Below, one piece after another: positions 1-59,479 of a stretch of 64,000 nt of DNA. Position 1 is the stretch's first letter. Each line of letters starts with the position of its first letter. A program made the position numbers and the translations under genes. The notes under the pieces were generated by a model. It ran no database searches, was not told where the DNA came from, and worked only from the letters and a program-made list of their open reading frames with translations. The stretch is from Octopus sinensis. Its lineage: Eukaryota. The stretch spans positions 70,866,001-70,930,000 of the forward strand of contig NC_043005.1 of NCBI RefSeq assembly GCF_006345805.1, written 5' to 3'.

Positions 1-166
1 AATAATAATAATAACATTGAAAAATACTTTAGGAATGAGAACCCAGGTTCGAAATTTCCCCAAGATACCTGATGAAGGCTGGAGGATATATCAGCTGAAA
101 CGTTGTGTTAACAACAAACAAGATGAGGACAAATATCCATCAAATGTAAATAATGTAAATAATGTA
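1..166 (+). mobile_element. Penelope-like element 3' end (pLTR) following an (AAT)n tract
   Basis: Same sequence recurs at 19250-19445, where it follows a GIY-YIG C-terminal remnant; contains an HHR fold. Confidence 0.75.
64..109 (+). ncRNA. Minimal type I hammerhead ribozyme
   Basis: GATAC-CTGATGA-A-GGCTG(10 nt)CAGCT-GAAA-CG-TT-GTGTT; stem I GATAC/GTGTT, palindromic ACGT stem III. Confidence 0.75.
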
Positions 167-394
167 AGACTATATTAATTGCCTCTTCACCTTACTACTG
201 AGTTATTTAGAGATCCAGATGTGGCAGCATAGAAAGATGTTTGCTTCTCCACCAAATGGTTCTAGGTTCAGTCCCACTGCTTGGCACATTGGACTAACGT
301 CTTCTACTATAGCCTCAGGCTAACTAAAGCCTTGTGAGTGGATTTGGTAGATGTGTATGAGATTCTAAAACCAAAGTGTTACATAAAATGTGTG

Positions 395-610
395 GGTGTT
401 GGTGTCATGTAAAAAGCACCCAGTACACTCTGTAAAGTGGCTGGCATTAGGAAGGGTGTCCAACTGTAGAATCCATGCCAAAACAGACTATGGAACTTGG
501 AATGGTTCCTTGCCTTTCCAGTTCCTGTCTAACCATCTGACCTATGCCAGCATAGAAAAGGACATTAAATGTAGATGATGATAATGAAGATGATGGTTAT
601 GATGATGATG
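395..610 (+). mobile_element. RTE LINE 3' UTR fragment with (GAT)n tail
   Basis: AAAAAGCACCCAGTACACTC...GGCATTAGGAAGGG...AAATGTAGATGATGAT; matches the tail of the RTE copy at 27100-27300. Confidence 0.7.
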
Positions 611-804
611 TTGCTTCACTGTAGTCTCCATATAATACTAAACTTTGGCAGAATACTTTTATATTTACAGTCGACACATATGAAAATAACAAAACTACAC
701 TAGCAAGTGTGTGTGTGCATGTATGTTTGTTTATATATATGCATATGTGCATGTCCGTATATATATTATGAATGTATGTGTATATGGGTGGGTATGTGTG
801 TGTG

Positions 805-1060
805 AAGGTGCATGGCTTAGTGGTTAAGATGTTGCACTCATGATTGCGAGATCATAGGTTCAATTCCCAGACCAGCTGCTGCATTGTGTTCTTGAACAAA
901 GCACTTCATTTCACATTGCTCTGCGATGATTTCGACATCTGCCATGAGGCACCTGTTTGCACCACTATATCTGAAGGGAGGTGAGCTTGCATCTATACAA
1001 ACAATCATCTGTGTGGTTGTTTGGTAAGAAATAGTCGAATCCCCATGCGTCATCTAACGA
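805..1060 (+). mobile_element. tRNA-derived SINE (head GGTGCATGGCTTAGTGGTT)
   Basis: A-box-like TGGCTTAGTGG, B-box-like GGTTCAATTCC, followed by GTGTTCTTGAACAAAGCACTT; related copy at 37878-38125. Confidence 0.7.
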
Positions 1061-1154
1061 TTGGTGAGTTTATTATATGTATATATACACTCATACACAC
1101 ATACATGTATACACACACACACACATATATATATATATATATATTATATATACG

Positions 1155-55835: not shown

Positions 55836-56257
55836 GCATAGGAGTGGCTGTGTGGTAAGTAGCTTGCTTACGAACCATATGGTCCCGGGTTCTTTCCCAC
55901 TGCGTGGCACCTTGGGCAAGTGTCTTCTACTATAGCCTTGGGCTGACCAAAGCCTTGTGAGTGGATTTGGTAGATGGAAACTGAAAGAAGCCCGTCGTAT
56001 ATATGTATATATATATATATGCGTGTGTGTGTGTCTATGTTTGTGTGTTTGTGTTTCTTCCCCCAACATTGCTTGACAACTGATGATGGTGTGTTTATGT
56101 TCCCGTAACTTAGCAGTTCGGCAAAAGAGACAGATAGAAATAAGTGCTAAGCTTACAAAGCATAAGTCCTGGAGTCGATATTCTCAACTAAATGGCGGTG
56201 CTTCAGCATGGCCACAGTCAAATGACTGAAACAAGTAAAAGAGTTAAAGAGTAAAAG
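55836..56257 (+). mobile_element. SINE family A
   Basis: Full-length copy. Confidence 0.9.
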
Positions 56258-57139
56258 TGTATTGGGGTCGATTCATTTGACTATAATTCTTGAAGGTGGT
56301 GCTGCCACGTGGCCACAGTTTAACGACGTCCTGTAACAAATAAAAGGTAAAAGTTATGTTCGACGGCAAAAGGAAGAACTAAACAGCTTTGAATCATAAC
56401 TTTACTCGACTACGGAGTTGACCCGTGGTTAAACAACAACAAGTGAGTGAGTGAACTGCGACAATGTTGAATGATGTGTCCTACTCTGCACCATCACAAA
56501 GCATCTGTGATAGATTGCAAATCGCTGACTTCATTAAGAGATAGTCTGCTTGTGACCAAAATTCTTTGTTTTTACTTGCGACATCACATTTTATTTCAAC
56601 AGTTTTGCAAGCCTTGAGGTTTCACAAATATTTGATAATCCACCTTTTTGTACTTTTTCATTGAAACTGATTTCATCTGATTGATTCATTGATTCATTGA
56701 TTCGCTGATTTGGTCATTGATTCATTGATCAAAGCTCTTGATCTCTGTTTAGTTCTTTGTTCTCTTCTTATTGATATTTTCGCGTCCCTTCTTTGCCTTT
56801 ATCCTTTACGCCATCTCTCCCACCAATTGCATTACTACCACCATCACCACCACCGCCATCATTAACACCACCACCACCACCATTAACACCACTATCACTA
56901 ACACTACAATTGTCAATAACTATAATGACCAGCTAATGAAGCCATCTTTATGTGGTAGATCAACCAGCTAGAAATAGCAGCCAAACCTGTTTTGCTTAAC
57001 AATTTAGCGATTAAACCAGTCATATCTGGCCTATATGTTCTACTTGTTTTATATTCGAACCAACCAGGTCTGGCCTCTCATACTTATCCAACAATGTTGT
57101 TCTAAAAATATACCAATATATTTTTCCATTCCCATTTCC

Positions 57140-58410
57140 CATAGACACAGGAGTGACTGTATGGTAAGTAACTTGCTTACCAGCCACATAGTTCTAGGTT
57201 CAGTCCCACTGCGTGGCACCTTGGGCAAGTGTCTTCTACTATAGCCTCGGGCCAACCAAAGCCTTGTGAGTGAATTTGGTAGACTGAAACTGAAAGAAGC
57301 CCATCATATATATGTATATATGTATATAGGCGCAGGAGTGGCTGTGTCGTAAGTAGCTTGCTAACCAACCACATGGTTCCGGGTTCAGTCCCACTGCGTG
57401 GCATCTTAGGCAAGTGTCTTCTGCTATAGCCCCGGGCCGACCAATGCCTTGTGAGTGGATTTGGTAGACGGAAACTGAAAGAAACCTGTCGCATATATGT
57501 ATGTGTGTGTATGTTTGTGTGTGTGTGTTTTTGTCCCCTTAGCATTGCTTGACAACCGATGCTGGTGTGTTTACGTCCCCGTCACTTAGCGGTTCGGCAA
57601 AAGAGACCGATAGAATAAGTGCTGGGCTTACAAAGAATAAGTCCCGGGGTCGATTTGCTCGACTAAAGGCAGTGCTCCAGCATGGCCGCAGTCAAATGAC
57701 TGAAACAAGTAAAAGAGTAAAGACTATATATGTGTGTGTGTGTTTGTCCCCTCTCCCAACATTACTTGACAACCGATGCTGTTGTGTTTACATCCCCATA
57801 ACTTAGTGGTTCGGCAAAAGAAACCGATAGAATAAGTACTCGGCTTACAGAGAATCAGTCCTGGGGTCGATTTGCTCGACTAAAGGCAGTGCTCCAGCAT
57901 GGCCGCAGTCAAATGACTGAAACAAGTAAAAGAGTAAAGGAGTAAAGAGTATATCATTGAAGACCCAAAATTATGAAATATCTTTTATTTCAGTCGTTAG
58001 ACTGTGGCCATGCTGGTGCACCGTCTTGCAGAATTTTTAGTCAAATGTATTTACTTACTTTTTTTTTATGACTCTGGTATTTTTCTATCAGTCTCTTTTG
58101 CAGAACTGCTAAATTATGAGAATGTAAACACACTTGCACCAGTTGTCAAGTGATGGTGGTGGTGGTGGAGGGACAAACACAGACACAAAAGTGTGCACAC
58201 ACACACACACACATGCACACACACACACGTACATATATGTACATTTATACATATATACAATAGGCTTCTTTCAGTTTCTGTCTACCAAATCCACTCACAA
58301 GGCTTTGGTTGGCCCGAAGCTTTTGTAGAAGGTGCTTCACAGTAGGACTGAACCTGGAACCATGTGGCTGGTAAGCAAGCTTCTTACAGCATTGCCATGC
58401 CTGCCCCTAT
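57140..58410. mobile_element. SINE family A cluster (nested and duplicated plus copies, then a minus copy)
   Basis: Head at 57140, full copy 57328-57720, repeated 3' half 57740-57950, inverted copy 57975-58410. Confidence 0.85.
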
Positions 58411-59077
58411 GATAATGCACAGTTAATTCAAAACAATATGTCTTGCAAACAACTTGCACATGCAAGTGCTACCAGTCAAGAATTCCGCCTTTAGTCGAAC
58501 AAATTGGCCCCAGGACTTATTCTTTGTAAGCCGAGTACTTATTCTATCAGCCTCTTTTGCTGAACCACTAAGTTATGGGAACGTAAACACAACAGCATCA
58601 GAAGCCAGCAAGTGTATGGGGTTATCAGGAGAGAATGCGTGCCATTTTGGGGCCTACCACTCAGCAACACTATGAAGAAATGAGCATTACACTTCACAGA
58701 AGGCAGTGAGTTGGCAGAAGCATAAACATTTGAGGTGAAATGCTTAGCGGTAGTACCCCTGTCTTTACGTTCTGAGTTCAAATTCCACTGAGTTCGATTT
58801 TACCTTTCATCCTTTCAGGGTCAATAAATTAAGTATCAGTTGCATACTGGGGTTGATCTAATCAACTGGCCCCCTCCCCCAAAATTTCGTGCCTTGTGCC
58901 TAGAGTAGAAAAGATTACATTTCACAGAGTAATCTGAATGTTAAAGGGTTAATAACTTCTTTGAAGAATTAAATTAGTGGTACTCAACCATTATTTTACC
59001 TATGGATCCCTTTCATTCTTATTTCGCTTGGGGGTGGGGGGTGGGGAGCCCATGTAAGGTTTTATCATTAAAATTCA

Positions 59078-59479
59078 TAGTAAAGATTGTTTGCCAACAT
59101 AATATGGCATTCTTGGTTTAGGACTAATGTTGCTGCAATTTATCCCCAGGAAACATCGTCTCCAGCTGGCTATATGACACAATCTGTGCTCTTATATTTT
59201 CGAACAAGGGAATCTAGCACCTCCACTCAGCTCAAAACAATATCTGTGTATTGTGATTTCTGGGTTATTTCTCTTCATCAGCACAGAAATAACCCAGAAA
59301 TCGTGATACACGGATATTGTTTTGAGCTGAGTGGGGGTGCTAGATTCCCTTGTAAAAAAATATAAGGGCACAGATTGTGTTGTATAGCCAGCTGGAGATG
59401 ATGTCTCCTGGGGCTAAATTACAGCAACATTAATCCTAAACCAGGACTGCCATGTTATATTGGCAAACAATTTTTACTA
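59078..59479. repeat. Long palindrome (about 400 bp) with a 12-nt loop
   Basis: Arms of about 195 bp around loop CTTCATCAGCAC (59273-59284). Confidence 0.92.

Follow-up and report, generated by a model that had tools for sequence, protein, structure and literature searches.

Hammerhead motifs in 64 kb of the octopus genome

The stretch of DNA analyzed here (the window) comprises 64,000 nucleotides of the Octopus sinensis genome (contig NC_043005.1, positions 70,866,001 to 70,930,000 of the forward strand) and contains a set of short motifs with the form of type I hammerhead ribozymes, such as are known from Penelope-like elements (PLEs). A preliminary description of this DNA had listed such motifs and had read them as a dense system of several families hidden in non-coding DNA; overall, the observation is partly confirmed, as the hammerhead motifs are real in large part, and the interpretation is partly supported. 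The intact core, namely C3 U4 G5 A6 N7 G8 A9 with G12 A13 A14, A15.1-U16.1, and H17, is present at five sites, and at four of these (64-109, 6266-6318, 7855-7937, and 9456-9528) the core is accompanied by all three helices and a perfectly palindromic helix III. Across the sites, helix I is open and has 4-7 bp, helix II is closed by 3-6 bp, and helix III consists either of 2-4 bp with a loop or of the minimal form A-CG-U only. The five sites are as follows (the families are described in the next section).

64-109, plus strand: family A minimal hammerhead, found with the minimal-hammerhead descriptor; helix I GAUAC/GUGUU, CUGAUGA, bulged A, and GAAA; helix II of 6 bp (GGCUGG...CAGCU) with G10.1.U11.1; palindromic ACGU; U17 at position 104
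6266-6318, minus strand: family D hammerhead; helix I of 7 bp, CUGAUGA, helix II of 3 bp with a basal G.U, and GAAA; helix III ACAC-UAUA-GUGU, a 12-nt palindrome; C17 at 6273
7855-7937, minus strand: family E hammerhead; helix I of 5 bp, CUGAUGA, a long imperfect helix II with G10.1-C11.1, and GAAA; helix III AC-AUAU-GU, a palindrome; C17 at 7860; (TA)n begins 50 nt downstream
9456-9528, plus strand: family F hammerhead; helix I of 4 bp, CUGAAGA, helix II GUCU/GAC with an inner 8-bp stem, and GAAA; helix III AC-UGCA-GU, a palindrome; A17 at 9524; (TA)n begins 105 nt downstream
40242-40276, plus strand: family B minimal hammerhead with intact core; helix I GUUU/AAAC, CUGACGA, bulged A, and GAAA; helix II GAGC-UCU-GCUC of 4 bp with G10.1-C11.1; helix III AUGU, not ACGU; A17 at 40272

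The base pair 10.1-11.1 is thus G-C in 7855, 9456, and 40242 and G.U in 64 and 6266. Site 64, site 40242 with its relatives, and the two family C motifs at 21288 and 22362 have an additional nucleotide between A9 and 10.1, whereas 6266, 7855, and 9456 lack it.

Sites were sought with a textbook type I descriptor, which called for CUGANGA and GAAA, 4 bp or more in helix I, closure of helix II, A15.1-U16.1 as the closing pair of helix III (two closing pairs required), and any nucleotide but G at H17. The window gave four matches, at 6311(-), 7932(-), 9460(+), and 46191(-) (core-start coordinates), compared with 0.14 on average and at most 2 in 300 dinucleotide shuffles. Because shuffling destroys genomic hairpins, we added permuted-core decoys, i.e. 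all 720 permutations of the two core boxes, which were run with the same descriptor on the unshuffled sequence; here the mean was 0.09 and the best decoy reached 2, leaving the true core, with its four matches, as the unique maximum. A minimal-hammerhead descriptor, modeled on the description by Cervera & de la Pena 2014 (PMC4209133), matched once in its strict form (64-109), compared with 0.003 matches per window for the decoys, and four times when relaxed to 3-bp helices, which added 6311, 7932, and 9460 (decoys, 0.0125). With one core mismatch allowed, there were seven matches against 0.38 expected, the additions being 16102-16158, 52102(+), and 27102(-). The four complete cores and their excess over both shuffles and decoys therefore bear out the statement that type I hammerhead folds are present, and the positions originally given for the motifs agree with the computed boundaries to within 3 bases. 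In the raw sequence, most of the thirteen positions listed there show CUGANGA followed by GAAA.

Several candidates were rejected. The textbook match at 46132-46196(-), which was not on the earlier list, has a wobble-rich 3-bp helix II and a non-palindromic loop III; we take it as probably a chance match because this loop has 21 nt and the hammerhead fold lies at +2.3 kcal/mol. The one-mismatch matches 52102(+) and 27102(-) are at chance level. Further, 49551-49613(+), which had been put forward as a decayed hammerhead at 49548, lacks U16.1, has an open helix II and a helix I of only 3 bp, and is missed by every descriptor; this entry is not supported. The foldback at 59078-59479 contains a minus-strand CUGAUGA without a helix II. 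It spans ~400 bp, and a 12-nt spacer separates its two 195-nt arms, whose complementarity is 89%. With the plant microRNA model MIR2599 it reaches 65.9 bits (E=1e-10), which is below the gathering score, and it looks like a repeat of the miniature inverted-repeat transposable element type or a head-to-head repeat. The range covered by the preliminary description, which runs to 59479, stops exactly at the right edge of this foldback.

A feature that the first descriptor did not impose is the symmetry of helix III. The segment from 15.1 to 16.1 is perfectly palindromic in four of four intact, three-helix sites (ACGU, ACAUAUGU, ACUGCAGU, and ACACUAUAGUGU), and at 40242 and 16102 it is one CpG decay step off a palindrome. 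By our own calculation, the chance that a tetraloop is self-complementary is 1/16, which gives ~2e-4 for the three sites with tetraloops. The predicted energies of the helix III self-duplexes, -4 to -17 kcal/mol, fit what cleavage by dimers would require. Minimum free energy (MFE) folding by itself recovered the hammerhead fold at no site; this is expected for minimal hammerheads and is no evidence against them.

With Rfam, no family reached its gathering score anywhere in the window. The Hammerhead_1 model (RF00163) matched 9454-9530 alone, at 26.5 bits (E=9e-4 within a slice of 1.8 kb), where the gathering score is 34; the alignment covers the whole model, including the core and helices I-III, whereas the remaining sites went unreported. 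We attribute this to the model, in which helix II is expected to be compact and a helix III, missing from minimal hammerheads, is expected as well. At E≤10, the whole-window Rfam output is dominated by microRNA look-alikes driven by microsatellites (E down to 1e-10), which are artifacts. The compound (TA)n/(TG)n/(TATG)n microsatellites at 6600-7240, 7640-7820, 10900-11110, 14710-14980, 16240-16400, 17500-18080, and elsewhere yield dozens of them (mir-297, mir-466, mir-3149, and mir-1277), with E down to 1e-9. In view of such low-complexity hairpin artifacts, caution is due with counts of non-coding RNAs in cephalopod genomes that are based on E values.

Families, decayed copies, and insertion context

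Comparison of the flanks with the window by BLAST, together with alignments, groups the sites into family A (64 and 19357), family B (40242, 14096, 14562, and 1797), and family C (21288 and 22362) and leaves 6266, 7855, 9456, and 16102 as the single-copy sites of families D, E, F, and G; the BLAST of the flanks of 6266-6318 found no second copy in the window. There are thus six families with a credible hammerhead in 64 kb, plus the doubtful family C as a seventh, where at least seven or eight had been proposed from the dissimilarity of the flanks; the flanks are indeed dissimilar between families but are 70-87% identical within them. No hammerhead adjoins an open reading frame (ORF), in agreement with the suggestion that most members lack ORFs. 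The units and the decayed or doubtful copies are as follows.

15-157, plus strand: family A unit of ~143 nt, directly after an (AAT)n tract, 87% identical to 19307-19442
19357-19394, plus strand: decayed family A copy; by alignment, 8 nt within the core and helix II are deleted, and there are CpG-to-TpG changes
40163-40376, plus strand: family B element of ~215 nt between the (TA)n tracts 40115-40162 and 40377-40407
13987-14700, minus strand: family B direct pair of two 245-nt repeats (14700-14458 and 14234-13987) separated by a 223-nt spacer
14562-14596 and 14096-14130, minus strand: family B remnants at a distance of 471 nt from each other; in each, G8 has become A and position 6 is T
1797-1831, minus strand: decayed family B copy, ~70% identical to 14012-14156
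16102-16158, plus strand: decayed family G hammerhead; helix I AGACC/GGUCU of 5 perfect bp, CUGAGGA, and GGAA (A13 changed to G); helix III ACAUGUGU, one CpG-to-TpG step off the palindrome ACACGUGU; (TA)n starts 81-112 nt downstream
21063-21612, minus strand: left arm of family C, a unit of ~464 nt after which its first 86 nt recur, i.e. a partial tandem like that of a pseudo-long terminal repeat (pseudo-LTR)
22120-22575, plus strand: right arm of family C, head-to-head with the left arm and 86% identical over 469 nt, with a short interspersed nuclear element (SINE) inserted between the arms; (TA)n at 22571-22586

The sites 19357, 1797, 14098, and 14564 of the preliminary description were confirmed as decayed copies of the elements at 64 or 40243, and its decayed site 16103 likewise holds, with one core mismatch and a near-palindromic helix III. 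The two family A copies share both their 5' and their 3' boundaries, and each starts right after (AAT)n. The two repeats of the family B pair are 84% identical, and (TA)n is found at both outer ends. All decayed family B sites (1797, 14096, and 14562) carry substitutions at A6, G8, or G12, and they show CA where helix III of 40242 has UG, which is the pattern expected of ancestral CpG decay. In helix II of family B, pairs 1-3 are held in all four copies through changes from G-C to G.U, and one pair of helix I is G-C, C-G, and U.G in three copies (read directly, and from few copies). An intact ancestral core of family B is likely but not proven, to judge from these alignments. The block pattern of family B gave only chance-level matches, in viral contigs, and a peptide read across a family B copy had no protein matches. 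The claim for 40243 is upheld as regards the core; its helix III reads AUGU rather than the palindromic ACGU.

The family C motifs, at 21288-21357(-) and 22362-22431(+), had been listed among the hammerhead folds. Their core, helix I, and helix III are present, but helix II has an A.A mismatch at its base, the copy at 21288-21357 additionally has U4 changed to C, and the two belong to one repeat in inverted orientation; we regard them as doubtful hammerheads.

A stretch of 3.3 kb around large (TA)n tracts contains families D, E, and F, and this proximity of three different families suggests a local hotspot of recurrent PLE-type insertion. The E (minus strand) and F (plus strand) sites, which are unrelated in sequence, diverge head-to-head over ~1.1 kb of unique non-coding DNA and two SINE insertions (8044-8425).

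A (TA)n tract with n of at least 5 lies within 300 nt 3' of the cleavage site in 7 of 11 independent insertions, compared with 18% of random strand-aware positions (P=0.001), and in six of these insertions the tract is found at 50-144 nt. Both the 40242 element and the 13987-14700 pair have (TA)n on both sides. Family A differs from the other families, as no (TA)n was found within 1 kb downstream of it. Two layouts are seen, namely the direct pair of family B and the head-to-head pair of family C with its 86-nt terminal redundancy.

Relation to Penelope-like elements and alternative explanations

Hammerheads of metazoan PLEs have been described in which a short helix I is combined with a long helix II and G10.1-C11.1, and in which one nucleotide often separates A9 from 10.1; helix III is absent or short and palindromic, and the copies are mostly solitary, predicted to act as dimers, and weak in vitro (PMC4209133). 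The motifs in the window resemble them in being type I, in their invariant core, in a helix I of 4-7 bp, and in a helix III that is absent or has 2-4 palindromic bp; further, families A, B, and C have the extra nucleotide after A9, and three sites have G10.1-C11.1. As in the published set, the motifs are heterogeneous, with many families per genome, most of them are solitary, pairs on opposite strands at distances of some hundred bp occur occasionally, and their action is predicted to be dimeric. PLEs are also known for pseudo-LTR partial tandems, adjacent inverted copies, and a bias for insertion into microsatellites (Craig et al. 2021, PMC8557442), and the window matches this architecture in its pseudo-LTR-like partial tandems, head-to-head truncated copies, and insertion at (TA)n. 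The form and the insertion pattern agree with published PLE hammerheads in the short palindromic helix III, the bulge after A9 of families A, B, and C, the solitary copies, the layouts, and the microsatellite targets.

We conclude that the motifs are probably relics of PLE-derived, non-autonomous hammerhead units in the octopus genome that worked as dimers; in the same reading, the units would be 5'-truncated ends or short ORF-less elements carrying a type I minimal, dimer-dependent hammerhead ~50-150 nt from the 3' end. The mechanism that we propose is taken from the published model for PLEs and retrozymes. First, a transcript of several units, or two transcripts, would bring two ribozyme copies together. 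Second, the palindromic helix III segments would pair with each other into one extended helix, and the two active cores so formed would cut after H17. Third, a PLE reverse transcriptase and GIY-YIG endonuclease, provided in trans, would copy the unit-length RNA and insert it, with (TA)n microsatellites as the preferred targets, giving rise to partial tandems and head-to-head copies. The PLE parentage, cleavage, and mobilization of the units are put forward by analogy with these published elements. Because most of the copies are mutated and solitary, those in the window are probably inactive fossils.

Several observations weigh against this conclusion. First, no reverse transcriptase or GIY-YIG domain was detected by Pfam in the ORF fragments of the window, the six frames of 8426-9490 gave nothing at E≤10, and a motif sweep of the window for reverse transcriptase (YxDD) and GIY-YIG signatures was negative. 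The Pfam scan of concatenated fragments was judged unreliable because it missed a mariner-like fragment recognized by eye, and the fragments were also scanned individually, which gave a C2H2 zinc finger only. Since no coding remnant of a PLE is present, PLE parentage rests on resemblance and the literature and not on a demonstrated link, and, unlike in the published cases, the window holds no ORF for reverse transcriptase and endonuclease and no full PLE, so that a pseudo-LTR location rests on analogy. According to the literature, however, most genomic copies are solitary and without an ORF, and the missing ORF therefore lowers the proof of parentage but does not exclude it. Second, the G.U at 10.1-11.1 of sites 64 and 6266 departs from the usual G-C, sites 6266, 7855, and 9456 have no bulge, and two of these three carry unusually long helix II inserts of 39-48 nt. 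Third, the hammerhead fold has to compete with the MFE folds, and the gap is widest at 6266-6318 (-5.4 compared with -14.2 kcal/mol for the MFE fold); efficient cleavage by monomers would therefore not be expected from these folding predictions. Fourth, narrow slices at the sites other than 9454-9530 gave no Rfam hammerhead match even at E≤10, and the sole match is the sub-threshold one. Fifth, the other lineages of family B carry T at A6, and three lineages cannot prove an intact ancestral core. Finally, the preference for (TA)n is documented for Naiads, which are without canonical hammerheads, and only hypothesized for Neptune, whereas here it is seen with hammerhead units.

The elements could instead be active non-LTR retrozymes, whose transcribed tandem hammerhead repeats would cut themselves to unit length and be ligated into circular transposition intermediates. 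Such retrozymes have been described in animals (Cervera & de la Pena 2020, PMC7229834), their type I hammerheads with a short palindromic helix III are of the kind found here, and an origin from PLE pseudo-LTRs has been proposed in a preprint (Li et al. 2026), which ties the two kinds of element together. Like them, the units in the window are ORF-less and low in GC and contain a type I hammerhead, and families B and C, with the 471-nt spacing of the former and the 464-nt unit and partial tandem of the latter, approach the published range at ~460-470 nt. Retrozymes are, however, defined by tandem arrays with complete hammerheads in two or more consecutive units and by circular RNAs. TRF (2 7 7 80 10 50 1000, the parameters of the 2026 preprint) reported no tandem array over any hammerhead in the window, the cores of the sole direct pair (14096/14562) are both mutated, and the intact sites are all solitary and single-copy in the window. 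The retrozyme system with circular RNAs that had been inferred is thus not supported by the window, and we consider this explanation unlikely.

Slightly less likely again is that some units, especially those of family A, are ends of other retroelements on the opposite strand, with an (ATT)n tail, the plus-strand hammerhead being antisense and functionless. Some 3' ends of SINEs and of long interspersed nuclear elements (LINEs) carry a tail of the (ATT)n type, both family A copies abut (AAT)n at exactly one boundary, (TA)n is missing from the 1 kb downstream of them, and the window is rich in SINEs and LINE fragments. This explanation does not account for the strict minimal-hammerhead match in family A, which would be expected 0.003 times per window, nor for the other boundary, which is also common to both copies, unlike that left by random 5' truncation of LINEs; further, ARAGORN found no tRNA-like head.

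The motifs might also be chance matches to a short and degenerate consensus in AT-rich, hairpin-rich repeat DNA, as the Rfam gathering score is reached nowhere, plain CUGANGA occurs 34 times against ~29 expected, 46132-46196, 52102, and 27102 look random, and 49548 fails every descriptor. This is very improbable given that the true core stands alone at the top of 720 decoys on the same sequence and that the palindromes, the bulge, the proximity to (TA)n (P=0.001), and the tandem and inverted layouts, none of which was searched for, all agree. Chance is thus unlikely for the whole set and may apply to single sites. Least probable of all is co-option of one or more intact hammerheads by the host as a regulatory self-cleaving element of transcripts, for which the intronic hammerheads of amniotes are a precedent and to which the four cores that are intact amid heavily decayed repeats would point, but the sites have a typical transposable element setting beside microsatellites and SINEs, and recent insertions alone would leave intact cores among decayed copies.

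Overall, the hammerheads are real and, as a set, statistically solid, and the PLE-type relics that they probably represent are of a known kind, although not yet characterized in this host lineage. In Octopus vulgaris, PLEs have been annotated as a repeat order that underwent an old expansion (Jukes-Cantor distance of 0.2) and includes 31 families with recent activity (PMC13282606). For the giant squid genome, 235 Hammerhead_1 hits have been reported (PMC6962438), and our literature search found no paper analyzing hammerheads in octopus. The suggestion of a hidden or new ribozyme system is therefore not upheld, because a paper of 2014 (PMC4209133) had already described minimal PLE hammerheads and the large numbers in which they occur as single, isolated copies, and the octopus PLEs and the squid hits have been published as well.

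Other repeats in the window and the meaning of the hammerheads

Another repeat, which is very abundant, is a SINE of ~400 bp with at least 10 copies, e.g. at 21750-22115, 36000-36430, 39265-39680, 48240-48670, 55500-56260, and 57130-57950, and in inverted orientation at 4520-4910, 5270-5620, 30750-31110, and 40720-41235. It has a conserved 3' block, GGTGCTCCAGCATGGCCRCAGTCAAATGACTGAAACAAGTAAAAGAG, and its copies are often head-to-tail dimers (TRF periods of 185, 217, and 245 at 57148-57939 and 53581-54057); ARAGORN found no tRNA in any copy, and an octopus SINE 28-mer was absent from viral and metagenome contigs.

Beside the family B pair lies a 91-amino acid open fragment (13567-13839, minus strand; PYSPEIAPSDFHLF...), which reads like the C-terminal part of a mariner/Tc1 transposase and has no Pfam match. 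The fragments 26938-27300(+), 27922-28257(-), and 33012-33257(-) resemble the C-terminal part of LINE reverse transcriptases and contain no Pfam domain; one LINE-like ORF fragment matched Octopus bimaculoides proteins only, at 78 and 64% identity, in agreement with the octopus origin of the window; 27922-28257 is 78% identical to the O. bimaculoides protein A0A0L8FQH9, and 33012-33257 carries the motif IPVVIGALG. An 88-amino acid open fragment at 20374-20637(-) has two C2H2-type zinc fingers (Pfam C2H2-zf_KIN17, 29.9 bits, just over the cut-off) and could be a piece of a transposable element ORF or the remnant of an exon. The (CAT/CAC/GAT)n tracts at 32275-32825, 55173-55300, 56800-56920, and 61356-61760 give His-, Asp-, and Thr-rich pseudo-ORFs on both strands; these are of low complexity and are not genes.

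The finding is useful as a calibration and is not a discovery; the copies in the window are old, for the most part inactive, and of a kind already known. Standard Rfam annotation sees 1 of ~6 real hammerhead loci, and that one below threshold, and counts such as the 235 of the squid therefore probably underestimate the PLE-type hammerheads of cephalopods widely. Further, much of the unclassified octopus repeat content beside (TA)n may be derived from PLEs, and the association with (TA)n bears on whether hammerhead units parasitize the PLE machinery.

A bolder reading, which we offer tentatively and consider improbable although not negligible, is that ORF-less hammerhead units form a large, varied population in octopus genomes and parasitize a (TA)n-targeting PLE machinery (endonuclease and reverse transcriptase) of the Neptune or Naiad type. 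Provided that the window is representative, a genome would then contain ~10^5 motifs, and families outside the window would in some cases be tandem and expressed as self-cleaving, circularized RNAs. Were this so, animal retrozymes would extend to cephalopods, and hammerhead units would be linked to a target preference documented so far only for the hammerhead-less Naiads. If other parts of the genome contain tandem families that are intact, cephalopods would be a further lineage for ribozyme-bearing circular RNAs.

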